Sequence record: PV740454.1
Reading direction: 5' to 3' (one strand)
DNA: 64,000 bases
Made by a program: the position numbers and the translations under genes. Shown here in pieces: positions 17,640 through 48,206 of this stretch (position 1 is its first letter; the number at the start of each line of letters is the position of its first letter). The notes below the pieces were generated by a model, which searched no databases, was not told the DNA's origin, and saw nothing but the letters and a program-made list of their open reading frames with translations.

Positions 17640-18170
17640 ATGACAGAACCAACACTTACTAACTGGAACGAGCTTAAAGACAATAGCTTAGTGTATCGTA
17701 TCAATAACGAAATACTACACCCAATGGGATATGCTGCTGTACTCAATACCGAAACTGGTACGAGTGATCGCGTGCTCAAAACAGATAAGTTTGAATTCCC
17801 AGTCGATGTACACGACAAACATAAAAACAATGTCACTATGTCTGGGCTACTCGCGACTCATAAAGCTGTTGAAGCTCAAATCGCTGCTAAGTTCGGACTA
17901 GATGAATTATGGCACAATGTAATCGATAAAACAGATTGGTATTTCACGTGCGACGAAGAAGTAATAGAAGAGTCATACGAGTTTGTATTCGCCAAAACAC
18001 TCGATGAACTCGAAGCAGAAGACTACTACTCTATTGAAGTATACGGAACATCTATCTGGCGCTCAACTGATAAAGAATACTTCTTAGTAGTTGGTAACGA
18101 CGGTTGTGGCAATCAAGATATGTATCTGTTCTCGGCAAGCAATCTCGTAAAAGAAATAGAAATTTATTAA
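17640..18170 (+). CDS. hypothetical acidic protein
   Basis: ORF tiling. Confidence 0.7.
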   Translation: MTEPTLTNWNELKDNSLVYRINNEILHPMGYAAVLNTETGTSDRVLKTDKFEFPVDVHDKHKNNVTMSGLLATHKAVEAQIAAKFGLDELWHNVIDKTDWYFTCDEEVIEESYEFVFAKTLDELEAEDYYSIEVYGTSIWRSTDKEYFLVVGNDGCGNQDMYLFSASNLVKEIEIY

Positions 18171-18172
18171 AC

Positions 18173-18249
18173 AAAAGGGTTGACACATGTCAGCCCTTTT
18201 TTGTATTATAGCTACATCAAAACGAAACACGAAAAAGGAAAACATTATG
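18173..18249 (+). promoter_or_regulatory. terminator-fused early promoter/leader cassette
   Basis: GGGTTGAC-ACAT-GTCAGCCCTTTTTT; TTGACA-18-TATTAT; AAGGAAAACATT-ATG. Confidence 0.85.
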
Positions 18250-18471
18250 AACATCAACGACACTATCAAACAAGTTATCGCATACCGTGCTACTGAAGAA
18301 GGTAAACATGCTCATATCGCTGTATACCCTCGTAACTTCTTTCTTCAATCACCTTCAGTTCTTGTATGGCACCCAGAACAAGATAACAAAGATGTCGCTA
18401 TCTCTGAACAAGAACTTAAAGAATGGCGCGCTGCCGCTCGTGTTCATAAATTCATCGACATCGTTAAGTAA
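18247..18471 (+). CDS. hypothetical protein
   Basis: Cassette ATG. Confidence 0.7.
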   Translation: MNINDTIKQVIAYRATEEGKHAHIAVYPRNFFLQSPSVLVWHPEQDNKDVAISEQELKEWRAAARVHKFIDIVK

Positions 18472-18480
18472 GGATTCATT

Positions 18481-18657
18481 ATGATTTCAACAATCGCTGC
18501 TATACTAATAGCGTTCATGCTACTCGTGCTGGTAGTCAATGAGTTCAAAAACTTTCTAGATGATGACACCCGCGCTTACATAATCATTACAGCAACTGCT
18601 CTTGCAATCACTAATGCATATGCTGTTTTCAAACTAGAACACTATCTCATACCATAA
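18481..18657 (+). CDS. small 2-TM membrane protein A (58 aa, not in ORF track)
   Basis: AAGGA SD; MISTIAAILIAFMLLVLVVNEFKNFLDDDTRAYIIITATALAITNAYAVF. Confidence 0.65.
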   Translation: MISTIAAILIAFMLLVLVVNEFKNFLDDDTRAYIIITATALAITNAYAVFKLEHYLIP

Positions 18658-18666
18658 GGATAGACC

Positions 18667-18861
18667 ATGACTGTTATCATACTATTCCAAATGAGTATAT
18701 TCGCACTACTGCTGATGATACTCGTTAATGACAACAACAAATTCCTAGCAGATGGTGTCAAAGAAATACTACTCGTATCTGCTATCACTATATGTCTGAT
18801 TAATACTTTCTTTATCAGTCAATACGCAAGCATGTACAACATGCTAATGGAGAAACTATGA
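18667..18861 (+). CDS. small 2-TM membrane protein B, paralog of A
   Basis: AAGGA SD; LVNDNNKFLADGVKE aligns with VVNEFKNFLDDDTRA. Confidence 0.65.
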   Translation: MTVIILFQMSIFALLLMILVNDNNKFLADGVKEILLVSAITICLINTFFISQYASMYNMLMEKL

Positions 18862-19019
18862 CACTACTAACTATGATAATACTATTCGTCGTGCTGTCTA
18901 TAATCACAGTAACAATAGCTATTAGCTTTATCAACAACCCTGGCTTCATTAAACTAATGATTTTCGCTATCACAGGCTTTATCGCTTATGTGCTACTGAA
19001 TGTGATAGTCGCATCATGA
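18858..19019 (+). CDS. small 2-TM membrane protein C (53 aa, not in ORF track)
   Basis: ATGA overlap, GGAG SD; two hydrophobic helices around NNPG. Confidence 0.6.
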   Translation: MTLLTMIILFVVLSIITVTIAISFINNPGFIKLMIFAITGFIAYVLLNVIVAS

Positions 19020-19105
19020 GTGATATACCAATCAATTATATCATGCTTCTGCTATGCGTTCTAGCAGGGGTAGCTGGATGGTGCTTGAGCGATATCGGCA
19101 AATGA
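19016..19105 (+). CDS. small membrane peptide D (29 aa, not in ORF track)
   Basis: ATGA overlap; ends GWCLSDIGK. Confidence 0.45.
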   Translation: MSDIPINYIMLLLCVLAGVAGWCLSDIGK

Positions 19106-19121
19106 CTATATAAGGCAAACT

Positions 19122-19301
19122 ATGTTTATTATCTCAATCGCTATTTTTCTATCTGCAATCTACCTAATATGGACTGATAATAGCACAGATAACCTAGAAA
19201 GAATCTTAGCGCAAGTGATACTGCTAATGGCAGCAGCAATCAACTGCGTAGCTCAATGGGCTCTAAGCGACATTCTATCAGTAACGATGACTATATCATG
19301 A
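19122..19301 (+). CDS. small 2-TM membrane protein E (59 aa, not in ORF track)
   Basis: TAAGG SD; contains QWALSDI like D. Confidence 0.55.
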   Translation: MFIISIAIFLSAIYLIWTDNSTDNLERILAQVILLMAAAINCVAQWALSDILSVTMTIS

Positions 19302-19403
19302 TGTACTGCAAAAACGCTTAGAATACCACACAGACAGGCTCAGAGCATAGTACAACACTCATTGTTTTTTAATATATCGCACCCCGGTTCGTTTTCTACA
19401 ACA

Positions 19404-19512
19404 TGTGGGTAAATCTGTGGATAATATGTGTGTGAGACTGTGCATAAGTGTCTGAGATATGTGGATAAAAACAGAAATCAACTGTGGATAAGTCTGTGGA
19501 TTACGTGGATAA
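19404..19512 (-). repeat. array of seven co-oriented DnaA boxes (candidate origin or DnaA sink)
   Basis: TGTGGATAA at 19416, 19460, 19483; TGTGCATAA 19439; one-mismatch boxes at 19404, 19495, 19504; in gene-free gap 19302-19670. Confidence 0.8.
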
Positions 19513-19670
19513 GTTTTTTGGCTAAAAATAGCAAAAGGCTCATCGGGAGTGGTGGGAATTAGAGAACATCGAAGAACATCGAAGGTGGTAAAGAACTTAC
19601 ACCATTTCTGAAAAATAATTTGACACCACTTGCGCTTATGTGAGAAGATAGCGCGGTGAGAGGAGAGAAT

Positions 19671-20195
19671 ATGAAACAATTGATATTAAAAGATCGCATG
19701 AGTTTGCGCGTGGTAGATCAAGTGCATAGAGTGCATTACCATACGTTGCGACATGAGAATCGAACTGGTATGCCGTTTAATGTTGAGTGTAAAGGTGATG
19801 ATTGTGTTGTGTGTTCGCATGTTGACGGGTTGATTGCAGCACAGAAAGGTTCAGAGGCGTGTAATTTACGAGCTAAAGTGCAATACCAAGTGCGAGTAAT
19901 CGACTTGAATGATGTATCGAGTGGTGTACAAGTGTTGTGTTTCAGTCGCACGTTGCTTGATGCCGTGACTGATGCGCTTGAAGGTTCAAACGAGCGTGAG
20001 TATCGACCACTTGAGATACGTTCATCTGAATTTGCTCGTGGGTTTCGTAGTTATAGAGATTCATTTGCTGGTAATGTTATTCGTACAGCAATTAAGATGA
20101 AATTCAAGTCAACTGAAGAGTACAAGCTACCGTTTTACATTACGCCGTATGATGCTGATGCGATTCTGCGACATTTATTGAAGGGGTTAACATGA
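19671..20195 (+). CDS. gp32-like Zn-binding OB-fold ssDNA-binding protein lacking acidic tail
   Basis: H...C...CxxC ligands; RAKVQYQVRVID, GVQVLCFSRTLLDAV, GFRSYRDSF parallel T4 gp32 KRKTSYWANILV, GKVFKYRFGKKIWDKI, GFSNYDESKF. Confidence 0.65.
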   Translation: MKQLILKDRMSLRVVDQVHRVHYHTLRHENRTGMPFNVECKGDDCVVCSHVDGLIAAQKGSEACNLRAKVQYQVRVIDLNDVSSGVQVLCFSRTLLDAVTDALEGSNEREYRPLEIRSSEFARGFRSYRDSFAGNVIRTAIKMKFKSTEEYKLPFYITPYDADAILRHLLKGLT

Positions 20196-20338
20196 TTACA
20201 TTAGCTTTGTTCTATATGAGTCGAGATATGAGTTACAGCGAACGACCAAGTGACTTGTATATGGGTACAGTGATATTAGATTTTGCCTTAATCGCGACTG
20301 TGTTTTGTGGTATTATGATGTTTACGGGAAATTGGTAA
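20192..20338 (+). CDS. small membrane protein (48 aa, not in ORF track)
   Basis: ATGA-type overlap, GGGG SD. Confidence 0.5.
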   Translation: MITLALFYMSRDMSYSERPSDLYMGTVILDFALIATVFCGIMMFTGNW

Positions 20339-20952
20339 TGAAAAAGATTGAATTGAAGAAGAAAGTAATAGAGAAGAAAGGTGTCTTGCCAGATCAAGTT
20401 ATGGTGCGAGTTGAGACGTATTACCGTTCATTGAGTGGTTATTTGAATCATCTAAGTGCTGAGCATAAGTTACGTGGTATTACTTATTCTACGCATATGC
20501 TTGTTACAGAAGATGGTGCATTCTTCAGTATTGACGAAGACCGTTTGAATGGTGATAAGCAGACACGTGAAAAGCACGATGGTCAGTTAGTTGCAGTACA
20601 TGCGCGTTTACAATTGCCATCGAAAGATTGGGATTGGTATCCATGCAAGTGGAAAAGCGGTCGTCTTGTGTATACGTACAAAGAGCAAGATTTCGTAGAA
20701 GAAGAACACGAGCTAGTGGTTGGTGAGATTATCGACATTTATGCTGCTGATGATGAGCAAGCACGTTCGCCTCATGATGCAACTATCATTGTGAGTCGTC
20801 CGAAGCAAATCGTTGTTGAAGCGTATAGTAGACTTGCGATATTCCATGTTAGTAATGCAGAGAACAATGGTGATTTGATTTCTGATTGTGGTGAGTATCG
20901 TTTAAGTGGCAAGTACGCTGCTAGTGAATACGACGAAGAGCTTCATTCGTAA
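20338..20952 (+). CDS. hypothetical protein
   Basis: TAATG coupling. Confidence 0.7.
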   Translation: MKKIELKKKVIEKKGVLPDQVMVRVETYYRSLSGYLNHLSAEHKLRGITYSTHMLVTEDGAFFSIDEDRLNGDKQTREKHDGQLVAVHARLQLPSKDWDWYPCKWKSGRLVYTYKEQDFVEEEHELVVGEIIDIYAADDEQARSPHDATIIVSRPKQIVVEAYSRLAIFHVSNAENNGDLISDCGEYRLSGKYAASEYDEELHS

Positions 20953-22420: not shown

Positions 22421-22432
22421 ATGGAGAACATC

Positions 22433-22765
22433 ATGACCAATTCAGATATTCAAGACATCAAAGACGCTGCTATTACGGTACTAGAACGTCGTAAGTTCGA
22501 CGATTGGACTTGCTGTCAAATTGCAATGCTACTGCCTGATGACGATTCAATCAGAATCGCTGCTCTTAACTACATCGAATCGTTCAGTGGTGCGTTTATC
22601 GATACTCTAGGTCTACCAGAGCATATCGCATCAGAAGCGGTAAACTACACGTCATTTTTAGACTGTATTGAAATCGACACTAAAGGCACTCAATGCGAGT
22701 TGTCAATGGAATACCTTCGCGAAGCATGGTTGAAATTTCTAATTGACAACGTGGAGAAAAACTAA
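22433..22765 (+). CDS. R.xWL paralog family, member 2
   Basis: WTCC...GAFID...REAWLKFL. Confidence 0.7.
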   Translation: MTNSDIQDIKDAAITVLERRKFDDWTCCQIAMLLPDDDSIRIAALNYIESFSGAFIDTLGLPEHIASEAVNYTSFLDCIEIDTKGTQCELSMEYLREAWLKFLIDNVEKN

Positions 22766-23139
22766 TGACTGATTTAGAGATTCAAGGACAAGTACGTTCT
22801 CAAGCAGCGCGTATTCTTAAAGAAAACGACTTTCATCATATCTGCATGTACACGTGCAATGATATCGAGTATTCGATTGTCGAAGACAACAAGGTTACTG
22901 CTGAAGAACAACCGCATGTGCGTTACGTAGTTCGTGATTACATCGAAACTCAAGCTACGGGGTTTCTTCGTGCATTACGCGATGACAGCTCAATTCTAGG
23001 GTTTAGTATTGGTCGTATTTTACCATTCGGCGCGTTTATTCATTCAATCGCACGTGTTGGTATAGAGAATGTTGATCAATCTCGATTTACAGCAGCACGA
23101 GCAGCTTGGTTGAAATACCTTTCTACTGGAGAAATGTAA
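22765..23139 (+). CDS. R.xWL paralog family, member 3
   Basis: YTC...GAFIH...RAAWLKYL. Confidence 0.75.
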   Translation: MTDLEIQGQVRSQAARILKENDFHHICMYTCNDIEYSIVEDNKVTAEEQPHVRYVVRDYIETQATGFLRALRDDSSILGFSIGRILPFGAFIHSIARVGIENVDQSRFTAARAAWLKYLSTGEM

Positions 23140-23498
23140 TGGAAAAAGTACTACGCGAAGTAGCAAAAGAGCTACTTGAAGAAACCGATCTTCTTAAAGA
23201 CCGAGGCTTTTTTAGCTGTCATGAGCTACGTGACCGCGCAAAACGTCGAGGTGTCAATGCATTCAAAGTTGAAATGCTAATCGACAATATTGGCGAAAAA
23301 TTCGTTACGCGCATCAGAGCACGTAAAATCGGTGTTGCTAATATCACTGACTTTGCGTACCGCCGTAATGAAAATCGTAGTTACGTTGGTGCTTTTGTCC
23401 ATGCATATTCGTACGTAGCAGAAGACGAGATCGACGTAAACACGTTATTCGAGATTCGCACAGCATGGCTTCAATTTGTAGCAGAAGGCGATTACTAA
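23139..23498 (+). CDS. R.xWL paralog family, member 4
   Basis: FSC...GAFVH...RTAWLQFV. Confidence 0.75.
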   Translation: MEKVLREVAKELLEETDLLKDRGFFSCHELRDRAKRRGVNAFKVEMLIDNIGEKFVTRIRARKIGVANITDFAYRRNENRSYVGAFVHAYSYVAEDEIDVNTLFEIRTAWLQFVAEGDY

Positions 23499-23872
23499 TG
23501 ATTGATGAACTAGTAAAAACAACCGCAGCGAGTATGCTTGAAGATACAAGTTTGCTTTGCGACGAGAAAGAATATTCATGTTGCGTCATCGTCGATAAAA
23601 TGGTAGAGCATCATGGCTACGTACCTCATACTGTATATCAGCATTTAGACGTAAAAGGCGTTGAGTTCTTACAGCTTGTTTTAGACAAGCCAGAAACACT
23701 ATGCTTTGAATTATCACCTGATACACTCGCTATGGTAAAAGAAGACATCGATGATCAAGACCCATCTGCGTTTGTTCATTATATCGCTCGTAATAGCAAT
23801 GACAGTTTAGACCCAGTGAAATTCGAGAACGTGCGCACAGCATGGTTAACTTTCTTAGCAGAAGGCAATTAA
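23498..23872 (+). CDS. R.xWL paralog family, member 5
   Basis: YSC...SAFVH...RTAWLTFL. Confidence 0.75.
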   Translation: MIDELVKTTAASMLEDTSLLCDEKEYSCCVIVDKMVEHHGYVPHTVYQHLDVKGVEFLQLVLDKPETLCFELSPDTLAMVKEDIDDQDPSAFVHYIARNSNDSLDPVKFENVRTAWLTFLAEGN

Positions 23873-23873
23873 G

Positions 23874-24395
23874 ATGACATTAGAAGAACGCCTTGCATTG
23901 CTCGAACAAGAGCTAAGCACCACACCACCAGCGCAAATACTAGCTGAATTGAAGTCATACGAGCCTAAAGGTTCGCTGGTGGATGATTTCATTCTTGACA
24001 CACTCATCCCGACTCTAGCTAAAGCCAAAGCACATGAGCTACTAGCTGATGAGCGTATGGTCACAGACATGGAAGTTTACACGTGCAACGAGATCAACAA
24101 CTTTGTAATTGATGCGCTTGAAATCGACGATTACGACGAAGCACAAGCGGTTCGTTTTTATCTTCAAGATCAATCTAAGGCGTTTGTTGAAAGCGTTGTA
24201 TCTGATGCAGAATCTGTAGTAGGGTTTACACCATCTGACTATGCATTATCTGAATTACAGGTAAGTCTTGATAATTGTCGTTACCAAGGTGCGTTTATTC
24301 ATGTAATGGTAATGAACGACTACGGCTATAAAGACGAGACGAAGTTCCCATCTGCTCGTACAGCTTGGTTGAAATTTATCTTAGAAAATGCTTGA
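23874..24395 (+). CDS. R.xWL paralog family, member 6 (N-terminal extension)
   Basis: YTC...GAFIH...RTAWLKFI. Confidence 0.75.
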   Translation: MTLEERLALLEQELSTTPPAQILAELKSYEPKGSLVDDFILDTLIPTLAKAKAHELLADERMVTDMEVYTCNEINNFVIDALEIDDYDEAQAVRFYLQDQSKAFVESVVSDAESVVGFTPSDYALSELQVSLDNCRYQGAFIHVMVMNDYGYKDETKFPSARTAWLKFILENA

Positions 24396-24443
24396 CAGAC
24401 ATTTCATACATCTGTATTCTACGTGTATTGAAAAGGAGATAAC

Positions 24444-24839
24444 ATGAAACTACGTACACTAATCATCGAAGGCGCAGCAGAGCTAGTTCAAGACAAAGAG
24501 CTTTTATCAGACAAATCCCAATTCAGTTGCGGTCTAGTTGCAATGCACTGTTGTAAACACGTTAAATCATCTAGACAATTTCGAGTTTACGACGAAGCGC
24601 AGAAAATCATTCGTCTTGAAGCGAAGGTGTTTTTGAAAAAGATACTAGCTGATGACGAATCGATTATCGGGTTTAGCTTATCTGATGAACTACGCGAAAA
24701 AACAGAAGGTATGCTTGGTTACGAGTGTAATGCCTTTGTTCATACGCTATCAACAATAGCTGAAGACGTTCGCGACGCGAATCGATTCACTGCTGTACGT
24801 AAAGCATGGTTAACTCACTTAGCAAATGGAGAAGTATAA
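24444..24839 (+). CDS. R.xWL paralog family, member 7
   Basis: FSC...NAFVH...RKAWLTHL. Confidence 0.75.
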   Translation: MKLRTLIIEGAAELVQDKELLSDKSQFSCGLVAMHCCKHVKSSRQFRVYDEAQKIIRLEAKVFLKKILADDESIIGFSLSDELREKTEGMLGYECNAFVHTLSTIAEDVRDANRFTAVRKAWLTHLANGEV

Positions 24840-25207
24840 TGTACGATTTAATGGCAGCAAAAGCACGTAAGATTCTAAGCGATTCTGATTTCATGACAAA
24901 CGAGCACGAGTTTAGTTGCCTTGCTATTGCTGGTTATGTTGAGCGTAACAGCGACATGCGTTACCGTGATGCAAGTGCAGCAGTGAAAGAGCTTGGTGCA
25001 TCGTTTGTTTACCAAGTGCTAAAAGACGACGTATTCATGCTTGGTTTTGAGCTATCAGATTATGCTCGTGCGAAGATCGCAGATGAAGTCGACCAGTTTG
25101 TTCATGATATCGCGTCATCATCTGAAGACAATATCGACCCAGAGCTGTTTCGACGTGCTCGTAAATCATGGTTAGAGTTTGTCATTGAAAATGGGGAAGT
25201 GCAATGA
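24839..25207 (+). CDS. R.xWL paralog family, member 8
   Basis: FSC...DQFVH...RKSWLEFV. Confidence 0.75.
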   Translation: MYDLMAAKARKILSDSDFMTNEHEFSCLAIAGYVERNSDMRYRDASAAVKELGASFVYQVLKDDVFMLGFELSDYARAKIADEVDQFVHDIASSSEDNIDPELFRRARKSWLEFVIENGEVQ

Positions 25208-25560
25208 TTTCATTGGTTGTTCAAGTAGAAGCATTCAAGTTGCTTGAAGACAAAGACCTTCTACGTGATACATGTCAGTACACATGTAATATTCTAGAAG
25301 ACAACGCGCATCGAGTCAGTGCATACGGTCGTATTGCTATTGGTGAATACATTGAAGCGAAAGGGCTAGAGTTCTTACAGTGCGTTCTAGACGAAGAAAT
25401 CAATTTCAGTTTTGATTTTGACCGTGAATCGATTGCTGATTCTGTACGTGATAAATTCCCGGGTGCATTTGTGAATCATATTTCAGGTGAAGACATAGAG
25501 TGTTTTGCTGAAGTTCGCAGAGCATGGTTAGAGTTTTTGACAGTGGAGCGTGACGTATGA
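25204..25560 (+). CDS. R.xWL paralog family, member 9
   Basis: YTC...GAFVNH...RRAWLEFL. Confidence 0.75.
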   Translation: MISLVVQVEAFKLLEDKDLLRDTCQYTCNILEDNAHRVSAYGRIAIGEYIEAKGLEFLQCVLDEEINFSFDFDRESIADSVRDKFPGAFVNHISGEDIECFAEVRRAWLEFLTVERDV

Positions 25561-39872: not shown

Positions 39873-40556
39873 ATGTTTGATTTACTGTTTAACATCAACC
39901 ACACTGTGTTTTCAATAGGCGATTATGCAGTATCTGGTCTAGAACTTTGGGCTACAATCACTGGCTTGGTATGTGTCATCATGGCGCGTATGAACATGAA
40001 GCACAACTTCACAGTCGGCATTGTGAACTGTATCGGATTTGCGATTCTGTTCTTTCAGATTCAGCTATACAGCGACGTGCTCTTACAGGGATTCTTCATT
40101 GCAGCAAGTGCATACGGGTTCTATCAGTGGAATAAGAAAGACGACGATGAAGTCCTCATTCAATATATGACGCCGCTAAGCACGTTCCTTGCTATCAGCT
40201 TAACCGCTATCGCAACATACGCACTTACCCACAGCATTGACACGATAATGTGGATAAGTGGCAACATTCTTGTGGATAACTATGAACATATCCCAGCAGC
40301 ACTATCTGGATTAGATGCATTCACAACGTGTGCGAGTATCATGGCGTTCATGCTGATGATTCAGCGTAAAGTCGAAGCGTGGTTGTTCTGGGTAGCAGTG
40401 AACGTCGTGTGTATCTACAACTACAGCGCACAAGGTGTTATCGTAGTCGCAGTCGAGTACTGTATCTTCCTAATGAACGCTATGTTAGCGGTATTAACGT
40501 GGCATCGTGAAGCATCACAAAACAAGTTGATGCTTGACTTGAAAGAGCAATGGTGA
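39873..40556 (+). CDS. pnuC: nicotinamide riboside transporter PnuC
   Basis: LELWATITGLVCV, YSD..LQ.FF...YG.YQW, DAFTT, RK.E.W..W..VN. Confidence 0.9.
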   Translation: MFDLLFNINHTVFSIGDYAVSGLELWATITGLVCVIMARMNMKHNFTVGIVNCIGFAILFFQIQLYSDVLLQGFFIAASAYGFYQWNKKDDDEVLIQYMTPLSTFLAISLTAIATYALTHSIDTIMWISGNILVDNYEHIPAALSGLDAFTTCASIMAFMLMIQRKVEAWLFWVAVNVVCIYNYSAQGVIVVAVEYCIFLMNAMLAVLTWHREASQNKLMLDLKEQW

Positions 40557-47727: not shown

Positions 47728-48206
47728 AAGTATATGCAATTCACATCAACAACTTATCCACAGGCATGTTCTGCGGTGAGCCTATCGCGCAAGGTTGTTT
47801 CAATCTAATCGTAGATCGTCTACCGAGTGAAGCAATCTATGAGAGACACGGTCGTTTCTTAATCAGCAACACAGACGGGGTTTGGCGTCACTTTACAATC
47901 GGTGAGCAAGGCGGATTTGCTGGTCGTACGTTCAAATTGCGCATGAAAGGTGGCGTTGTATTCAAGAACAAAGGTTATCATTATGAAGAATTTCACGGCA
48001 ATCTTTGGGATACAGCAGCAGCCGTTCAAAAGTGTGAAGAACTCGCTGGTAGTCCATTAATGAGTGTTTCACTGCGACCGGACAGCAGTAACGGTTGTTT
48101 CATCGGTGGGTATTACTTCAGTCAAGATGAGGTGATCTTGAAGTTCAGTCATCTAATTCGATTCGCACACCCAACCCAGAACAGAGCAATAACATTTGGT
48201 GAATGA
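47724..48206 (+). CDS. hypothetical protein
   Basis: ATGA overlap. Confidence 0.65.
   Translation: MKVYAIHINNLSTGMFCGEPIAQGCFNLIVDRLPSEAIYERHGRFLISNTDGVWRHFTIGEQGGFAGRTFKLRMKGGVVFKNKGYHYEEFHGNLWDTAAAVQKCEELAGSPLMSVSLRPDSSNGCFIGGYYFSQDEVILKFSHLIRFAHPTQNRAITFGE

Follow-up and report, generated by a model that had tools for sequence, protein, structure and literature searches.

The DnaA-box array and its genomic setting

The window, which is the whole stretch of 64,000 nucleotides analysed here, is identical to bases 1-64000 of the genome of Vibrio phage CZ01 (PV740454.1; 247,138 bp; Straboviridae). CZ01 infects Vibrio natriegens and is a T4-like relative of phage nt-1, with which it shares 92% identity across the region of interest. 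Its genome encodes a complete T4-type replisome (gp43, gp45, gp44/62, gp41, gp59, gp61, gp32, UvsX, and UvsY), as well as AsiA and a 7-deazaguanine pathway. The early region is tightly packed with genes that all lie on the plus strand, and one of its larger non-coding gaps, spanning 369 bp (19302-19670), separates the two early genes CZ01_040 and CZ01_041. Within this gap lies an array of predicted DnaA boxes (19404-19512) flanked by conserved elements on its left and by a further conserved element and a promoter on its right (Table 1). The GenBank records carry no annotation at the array locus.

Table 1. Features of the gap and its two border genes in CZ01, in window coordinates.
Feature	Coordinates	Strand	Description
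CZ01_040	19122..19301	+	59 aa, hydrophobic; left border of the gap; last in a run of tiny hydrophobic ORFs
Left frame, upstream part	19315..19353		CGCTTAGAAT, then a (T/A)CAGA(G/C) motif that recurs at 10-11 bp (ACAGACAGGC/TCAGAGCAT); conservation extends between clades
AT-rich low-stability tract	19358..19378		5' of the TGTGGATAA-oriented boxes, 26 bp from box 1; kept in box-less KVP40
Left frame core	19372..19393		ATATATCGCACCnnGnnTCGTT; kept in clades whose flanking protein is only ~35% identical
DnaA box 1	19404..19412	-	TTACCCACA, one mismatch; TTATGCACA or TTATACACA in relatives
DnaA box 2	19416..19424	-	Perfect TTATCCACA; the same in all 13 phages; pairs with box 1 as a double box (3-bp gap)
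Weak eighth site	19427..19435	-	Plus-strand TGTGTGTGA; TGTGTGTAA or TGTGTATGA in relatives
DnaA box 3	19439..19447	-	TTATGCACA, one mismatch, fits TTWTNCACA; invariant in 13 phages
DnaA box 4	19460..19468	-	Perfect; TTATACACA in the VH7D clade; stands alone between spacers of 12 bp and 14 bp
DnaA box 5	19483..19491	-	Perfect; TTATGCACA in the VH7D clade; opens the terminal triple module
DnaA box 6	19495..19503	-	TAATCCACA, one mismatch; perfect in the VH7D clade; separated from box 5 by 3 bp (GTC)
DnaA box 7	19504..19512	-	TTATCCACG, one mismatch; perfect in the VH7D clade; abuts box 6 directly
Right frame element	19539..19546		CTCATCGG; invariant in 4 of 6 representative phages (CZ01, QD01, VH7D, KVP40)
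Sigma-70-type promoter	19620..19649	+	TTGACA, 18-bp spacer, GAAGAT, TG extension
CZ01_041	19671..20195	+	174 aa; gene 3' of the gap

A 9-mer fitting TTATNCACA / TT(A/T)TNCACA was counted as a DnaA box. The array then consists of three perfect boxes, four boxes with one mismatch, and a weak eighth site, all co-oriented on the minus strand. Every site reads TGTGNATAA on the plus strand, where the perfect boxes at 19416, 19460, and 19483 (TTATCCACA on the minus strand) appear as TGTGGATAA. A preliminary description of the locus had listed seven boxes (three perfect, one at 19439 fitting TTWTNCACA, and the others with one mismatch) with start-to-start spacings of 12, 23, 21, 23, 12, and 9 bp, and all of these positions and distances proved right. 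The eighth site, which it had missed, fills a 23-bp step, leaving gaps of 2 bp after box 2 and 3 bp before box 3, and makes the left part of the array a tract of four sites. The boxes had also been called helically phased. This holds loosely, as the register is ~11-12 bp, the value seen in DnaA oligomer arrays, and not the 10.5 bp of the helical repeat, and the last box is abutted at a distance of only 9 bp. The array is better described as two tracts with gaps of 2-3 bp plus one isolated box: a four-site tract (19404/19416/19427/19439; gaps of 3, 2, and 3 bp) is followed by a 12-bp spacer, the single box at 19460, a 14-bp spacer, and a three-site tract (19483/19495/19504; gaps of 3 and 0 bp).

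Six perfect boxes occur in the window, against 0.44 expected from shuffled sequences, and the same six are the only perfect boxes in the whole 247,138-bp genome. The claim that such clustering is unlikely by chance is upheld by a Poisson probability of ~7e-11 for at least seven same-strand sites in some 109-bp interval of the genome. The genome-wide box scan that had been suggested as a check identified the array as the sole 120-bp interval with more than three boxes (at most one mismatch) in the 247-kb genome. Two further perfect boxes (40249 and 40271, both minus) lie in the coding sequence of a pnuC-like gene, together with an inverted one-mismatch box at 40225. This 55-bp site (40225-40279) was considered as a second DnaA site and rejected, as neither ValKK3 nor 6E35.1a has kept it. 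The one remaining perfect box, the sixth in the genome, lies at 47754. The possibility that the gap represents a repeated regulatory cassette was ruled out by the uniqueness of its sequence in the genome.

Searches of Pfam, PHROGs, and PDB sequences with the proteins neighbouring the gap returned no match to a replication family, and CZ01_041 itself matched no entry of Pfam, PHROG, or PDB. This protein contains a Cys/His-rich segment (CKGDDCVVCSH), and its single-sequence AlphaFold model was discarded because of a pLDDT of 33. CZ01_041 is confined to CZ01 and nt-1; elsewhere the promoter leads directly to a conserved 48-aa ORF. Between the array and the promoter, CZ01 carries a direct 10-bp repeat (GAACATCGAA GAACATCGAA, 19561-19581), at the position of which nt-1 has a 10-bp deletion.

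Two other peculiarities of the early region were observed. At 22421-25560, ~8 paralogous small ORFs (~115-175 aa) with a common C-terminal motif (...AFVH...R.AWL.F/Y...) are arranged in tandem as a locally amplified family. In addition, assemblies of relatives from at least five independent sources (R10Z/R11Z, PVA23/PVA8/PC-Liy1, V09, 6E35.1a, and the partial contig TCU_VP02_YC) are cut at most ~1 kb from the locus, near the homologue of window 19550-20950, where the chance of a cut is ~0.8% per assembly. The ends of 6E35.1a overlap by 55 bp, as for a circular assembly contig. These cuts may be caused by a coverage or variant hotspot, a preferred packaging start, or software behaviour.

Conservation of the boxes and of the surrounding frame

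A BLAST comparison of the gap with related phages, likewise suggested in the preliminary description, matched 30 vibriophage records, and in more distant phages megablast matched the array alone. An alignment was built from 13 phages of three clades, namely CZ01/nt-1, QD01/VS1/VS2, and the VH7D group (VH7D/ValKK3/phi-ST2/phi-Grn1/R10Z/XZ1/PVA23/Va3). The seven boxes occupy identical positions in all 13 phages. Invariant columns make up 57 of the 63 in boxes as opposed to 22 of the 46 in spacers, and most of the box columns that vary correspond to the degenerate position N of TTATNCACA, the fifth base, where G, C, or T occurs. A single column of the array contains a gap, whereas the left flank has 24 such columns and the right flank 12. 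The weak eighth site shows one or two mismatches to TGTGNATAA in every box-bearing relative but F86, a more divergent phage that has kept the terminal triple along with several further boxes, of which one is inverted. Such a pattern is the footprint that would be expected of sites that are read by DnaA and whose spacing matters. The core of the earlier reading, a genuine, non-chance cluster of co-oriented DnaA boxes, is strongly borne out by evolution: across the 13 phages conservation is specific to the boxes, the N position is the one that varies, and the spacing is constrained.

The array is set in a conserved frame, which is kept with or without boxes in the syntenic gaps of KVP40, VH7D, D483, and F86. 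In VH7D and KVP40 the flanks comprise CGCTTAGAAT, the repeated TCAGAGC motif, TTTTTAATATATCGCACCATGCCTCGTT, CTCATCGG, and a TTGACA-N18-GAGAAT promoter that scores 10/12 and has a TG extension. KVP40 and its close relatives retain both flanks at 85-100% identity to VH7D, and in KVP40 the ~140 bp between them are only ~50% identical to the box cassette and contain no box. In the D483/6E35.1a clade, which infects V. crassostreae, the frame is also kept, and the boxes survive only as remnants (TGTGGGTAT and GTGTGTCATAAGTGTTTGA); the neighbouring protein of these phages is only ~35% identical to that of CZ01. The distribution of the sequences suggests that the boxes are probably ancestral and were lost at least twice. 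Because the KVP40 and D483/6E35 lineages lost the boxes while keeping the surrounding frame, the array appears to be accessory. The frame, in turn, is better conserved than the neighbouring proteins, and since it persists in box-less lineages it must have a function of its own. Further relatives were sought by the flank motif in IMG/VR and metagenomes, and only KVP40 and VH7D themselves and chance matches were recovered.

Several identities of the frame were considered. An Rfam search of 18500-20500 returned nothing at E ≤ 1, and a conserved RNA structure in the left frame was rejected, as neither strand shows compensatory pairs and the sole stem is broken in CZ01 and D483. A minus-strand promoter in the left frame was discarded as well, its hexamers not being conserved between clades. 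Descent of the left frame from the DUE-R1 junction of oriC ('ATCGCAC') was also rejected, since its alignment to E. coli oriC is no better than that of shuffled sequences; similarity to E. coli oriC is significant only when centred on the boxes. The sole robust promoter of the gap is the sigma-70-type promoter on the right, which is directed away from the array and whose -35 element sits 108 bp past box 7.

The likely ligand and candidate functions

Permissive tblastn searches of CZ01 with E. coli DnaA, both whole and as domain IV, detected no homologue, the best match being one weak 39-residue alignment (E = 0.08). With no DnaA homologue in the phage, the DnaA of the host is the likely ligand of the array. 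Vibrio DnaA recognises E. coli-type boxes. Only ~0.17% of the Gs in nt-1 DNA are modified, to 7-deazaguanines (PMC6884629), so the boxes should stay readable, and a block of DnaA by base modification was rejected for this reason. In vivo occupancy by E. coli DnaA needs co-oriented box pairs 2-3 bp apart (Stringer et al. 2024; PMC11317965). Gaps of this size separate all members of the four-site tract as well as 19483 and 19495 (3 bp). From its sequence and conservation, the array is predicted with considerable confidence to consist of selected DnaA-binding sites.

What these sites would do for the phage is a matter of more tentative interpretation. The explanation preferred here, by analogy with the DnaA-box clusters (DBCs) of Bacillus subtilis and with datA of E. 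coli, is that the array may be a pad that binds host DnaA and, with the multiplication of phage genomes, depletes it at the host origin. Host DnaA would assemble cooperatively on the eight co-oriented, mostly high-affinity sites, which sit in a non-coding region that controls the early genes of T4-like vibriophages of the nt-1 and VH7D types, and the array would act as a constitutively occupied loading pad. Each phage copy would add about eight strong sites, and together the amplified copies would compete for DnaA with the host origin and with DnaA-regulated promoters. The withdrawal of DnaA would then curb new rounds of host chromosome replication in the course of infection.

This DnaA-holding pad is favoured because the sites are nearly all of high affinity, the bacterial counterparts of the terminal module are not origins, the hallmarks of an origin are weak, and the array is accessory. 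The loss of boxes with retention of the frame in KVP40 and D483/6E35 fits an accessory function in host manipulation. Other considerations speak against it. One infecting genome brings only eight sites, so titration would be relevant only once the phage DNA has been amplified, and what a lytic phage would gain from it is conjecture. The conserved spacing between the sub-tracts and from the array to the frame would be superfluous for a simple sink and hints at a defined nucleoprotein structure coupled to neighbouring elements. The orientation of the boxes relative to the AT tract matches the geometry of the left half of E. coli oriC, and the comparison with the DBCs of Bacillota rests on a 30-bp module that could be convergent.

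Because the inter-tract spacing is conserved and the orientation is oriC-like, a DnaA-assisted phage origin stays alive as a serious alternative, albeit a somewhat less likely one. A DnaA oligomer on the boxes would help to open the AT tract at 19358-19378 in the conserved frame, providing an entry bubble for the gp59 loader and the gp41 helicase, or for host DnaB. Such an origin would supplement, or be an alternative to, the R-loop origins of T4-type phages (oriF/oriG), which consist of a middle-mode promoter whose transcript persists over a downstream unwinding element. The co-oriented sites and their 11-12-bp register resemble the DnaA-oligomerisation regions of oriC, and the AT tract lies 5' of the boxes when these are read as TGTGGATAA, which is also how R1 and R5M are placed with respect to the E. 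coli DUE. The AT-rich tract to the left of the boxes, noted in the preliminary description, is real and falls among the least stable 0.2% of 20-30-bp windows. An origin would also agree with the conserved array spacing and distance to the frame, with a frame that is conserved beyond the neighbouring proteins and repeats a 7-mer at 10-11 bp in its upstream part, and with the size of the gap in an otherwise packed early region.

Against an origin stands the fact that T4-type phages initiate replication without DnaA, and the boxes have been lost in KVP40 and D483/6E35. The oriC-like nature implied by the preliminary description also proved weak on inspection. The AT tract is only ~20 bp long, the gap is unremarkable in stability at the 40-60-bp scale, the tract is equally conserved in phages without boxes, and 13-mer repeats are absent. 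A published rule for DnaA-trios (at least three NAN within 0-16 bp 5' of a TGTGGATAA-oriented box; PMC8287927) is matched internally, yet 36% of random positions pass it, and no trio run is conserved at the outer box that forms the edge of the array. The IHF core WATCAANNNNTTR occurs in none of the 13 aligned box-bearing phages, with one non-homologous match in F86, and the locus shows no skew inflection. An origin of the iteron type finds no counterpart either, the only other repeat being a 7-mer in two or three copies, with no adjacent rep-like gene.

A Dam/SeqA-type GATC cluster is likewise absent. The preliminary description correctly noted that 19302-19670 contains no GATC, and the gap is GATC-free in nearly all relatives; in CZ01 it belongs to a GATC-free stretch of 1926 bp (17766-19692), the longest in the window. 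For 174 sites in 64 kb, chance predicts a longest gap of ~1900 bp. As the observed stretch equals the chance maximum of 174 gaps, it is uninformative, and the proposal that the site would thereby escape SeqA sequestration carries no statistical weight.

Applied to the region as a whole, the idea that the array and the frame (7-mer, AT tract, and GC-rich core) form a replication start of the KVP40 group that is opened with the help of host DnaA is rather unlikely. If it were true, recruitment of the bacterial initiator would be demonstrated for the first time in a T4-like virulent phage, and the box-less lineages would have changed, at this same site, to a mode that does without DnaA.

A role in transcription is distinctly improbable. 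The DnaA-coated array would serve as a roadblock or insulator against read-through from the upstream small-ORF operon into the region of the next early promoter, or would tune that promoter to the DnaA-ATP (growth) state of the host. DnaA bound in transcribed DNA is reported to block elongating RNA polymerase, according to work cited in PMC11317965. The sites share one orientation relative to transcription, and the array is situated between the end of a plus-strand unit and the conserved TTGACA-N18 promoter. No terminator-like hairpin was found in the gap of CZ01 or VH7D, which makes a DnaA roadblock conceivable. The phages without boxes, however, have the same promoter and likewise no plus-strand terminator, and the eight sites exceed the number present in known roadblocks. 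Tuning of the promoter, for its part, is disfavoured by the position of the last box 108 bp upstream of the -35 element, beyond the classical range of activation or repression.

It is very unlikely that the repeats are iterons for a phage-encoded DNA-binding protein, resembling DnaA boxes by chance or allowing the protein to compete with DnaA. T4 oriE does use iterons together with a phage protein, and most neighbouring and early genes are uncharacterised, which leaves room for an unrecognised binder. The sites nevertheless match the DnaA consensus exactly and vary where DnaA tolerates variation, the phage encodes no DnaA-like protein, and the same module occurs in DnaA-box clusters of unrelated bacteria. 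Their spacing also follows the double-box rule of DnaA (PMC11317965). A non-functional relic, whether a captured bacterial DnaA-box fragment or a chance cluster, is scarcely credible: the terminal 30 bp have exactly the pattern of bacterial clusters and the array is dispensable in two lineages, but the chance probability is ~1e-10, purifying selection acts on the boxes and not on the spacers across clades with diverged spacers, and a relic would not have persisted, given that unmaintained boxes decay to ~50% identity.

For replication that does not depend on the host initiator, T4-type phages serve as the textbook example. The presence in a T4-like genome of a strongly conserved DnaA array of high affinity would imply an unrecognised interaction with host replication control, in which the phage either disarms DnaA by a DNA decoy, as in the preferred explanation, or exploits it. 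Either outcome would add a way of taking over the host, or of firing an origin, that resides in DNA sites and not in a protein. CZ01 and nt-1 infect Vibrio natriegens, a non-pathogenic laboratory species that grows fast, and the box-less relatives with the same frame (KVP40 and D483) offer natural comparisons.

Comparison with known DnaA-box systems

Clusters of DnaA boxes have been described on chromosomes and plasmids as well as in some temperate phages. P1 oriR, RK2 oriV, pSC101, and lambda pR-ori contain tandem DnaA boxes that recruit host DnaA beside an AT-rich region. These plasmid and temperate-phage origins have Rep iterons and an adjacent rep gene, whereas the array locus has neither, and CZ01 is a virulent phage with its own T4-type replisome.

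The left half of E. coli-type oriC (DUE-R1-R5M-tau2-I1-I2), like the bacterial basal unwinding system, resembles the array in its co-oriented sites, its 2-3-bp gaps, and the AT-rich tract on the 5' side. Box 5 of the array and its flanks are identical to E. coli R4 and its flanks at 19 of 21 positions. Unlike E. coli oriC, the array has no 13-mers, GATC cluster, IHF site, or conserved DnaA-trios. Its sites are nearly all of the high-affinity TTATNCACA class, as in datA and the DBCs, in contrast to the low-affinity, ATP-dependent sites of oriC. The core of DARS consists of three boxes that include oppositely oriented ones, while the array is co-oriented in the 13 aligned phages and F86 alone has one inverted box.

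E. coli datA is, like the array, a cluster of high-affinity boxes, and it lowers initiation potential. Its mechanism is now understood as an IHF-dependent hydrolysis of DnaA-ATP that needs an IHF site among the boxes. datA has this IHF site and distributes about five boxes over ~1 kb, whereas the phage array packs eight sites into 109 bp and has no conserved IHF core, which makes DnaA-ATP hydrolysis of the datA type unlikely at this locus. According to the account in PMC3245932, datA was first described as a titration site.

Dense DnaA-box arrays were also encountered on other viral sequences. Among 118 IMG/VR viral contigs with a perfect double box at a 3-bp gap, 25 have at least five boxes in 150 bp, and some have 8-11. 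The array-bearing contigs are unrelated to CZ01 and often GC-rich, none of them belongs to the KVP40 group, and their arrays lie beside GP88-family or uncharacterised genes. On some of these unrelated contigs, arrays of 6-11 boxes include many doubles with 2-3-bp gaps, and several adjoin genes for GP88-family or AT-hook-like proteins. Phage-borne DnaA arrays may thus be a broader phenomenon. The literature searched contains no description of DnaA boxes in KVP40-/nt-1-type or T4-like virulent phages; DnaA-box clusters as such were known before, and what is new within that literature is the presence of one in a T4-like virulent phage.

B. subtilis has six non-origin DBCs, one of them conserved 3' of gcp, which bind DnaA stably in vivo and whose deletion leads to early initiation (PMC2533591, PMC3245932). 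Binding to these clusters is decided by the density and affinity of their boxes (PMC2533591), and the array, with its eight sites in 109 bp of intergenic DNA, has the density of a DBC. The Bacillota DBCs (gcp/tsaD-ydiF and yydA-yycS) are, like the array, dense, intergenic, of high affinity, largely co-oriented, and located outside oriC. Unlike them, the array is carried by a virulent phage of a gammaproteobacterial host and not by a chromosome near oriC, and its copy number climbs with phage replication.

The terminal three-site module of the array was searched as TGTGNATAAGTCTGTGGATNANGTGGATAA (TGTGnATAA-GTC-TGTGGATnA-nGTGGATAA) in 185,579 bacterial and archaeal species, each represented by one genome. 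Matches were obtained in 16 bacterial genomes, nearly all of them Bacillota, with one Desulfuromusa and no Vibrio. None of the 16 loci adjoins dnaA. Several are found beside tsaD (gcp), one is located between the gene for the replicative helicase and purA, others adjoin DnaD-like/murC or further genes, and extra boxes are often close to the module. These loci correspond to the non-origin DBCs of B. subtilis, and the position beside tsaD agrees with the conserved Bacillus cluster near gcp. In bacteria the 30-bp module (TGTGnATAA-GTC-TGTGGATAA-TGTGGATAA) is usually followed by CT. The phage version (box-GTC-box-box) recurs letter for letter in the Bacillota loci at tsaD, at helicase/purA, and at the DnaD-like gene, a match for which convergence and transfer are indistinguishable because only 30 bp can be compared. 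Its recurrence in these genomes suggests that the three-site module may be a widespread DnaA-assembly unit used outside origins, and the exact identity between phages and Bacillota suggests that this unit, as yet uncharacterised, would be a preferred one.
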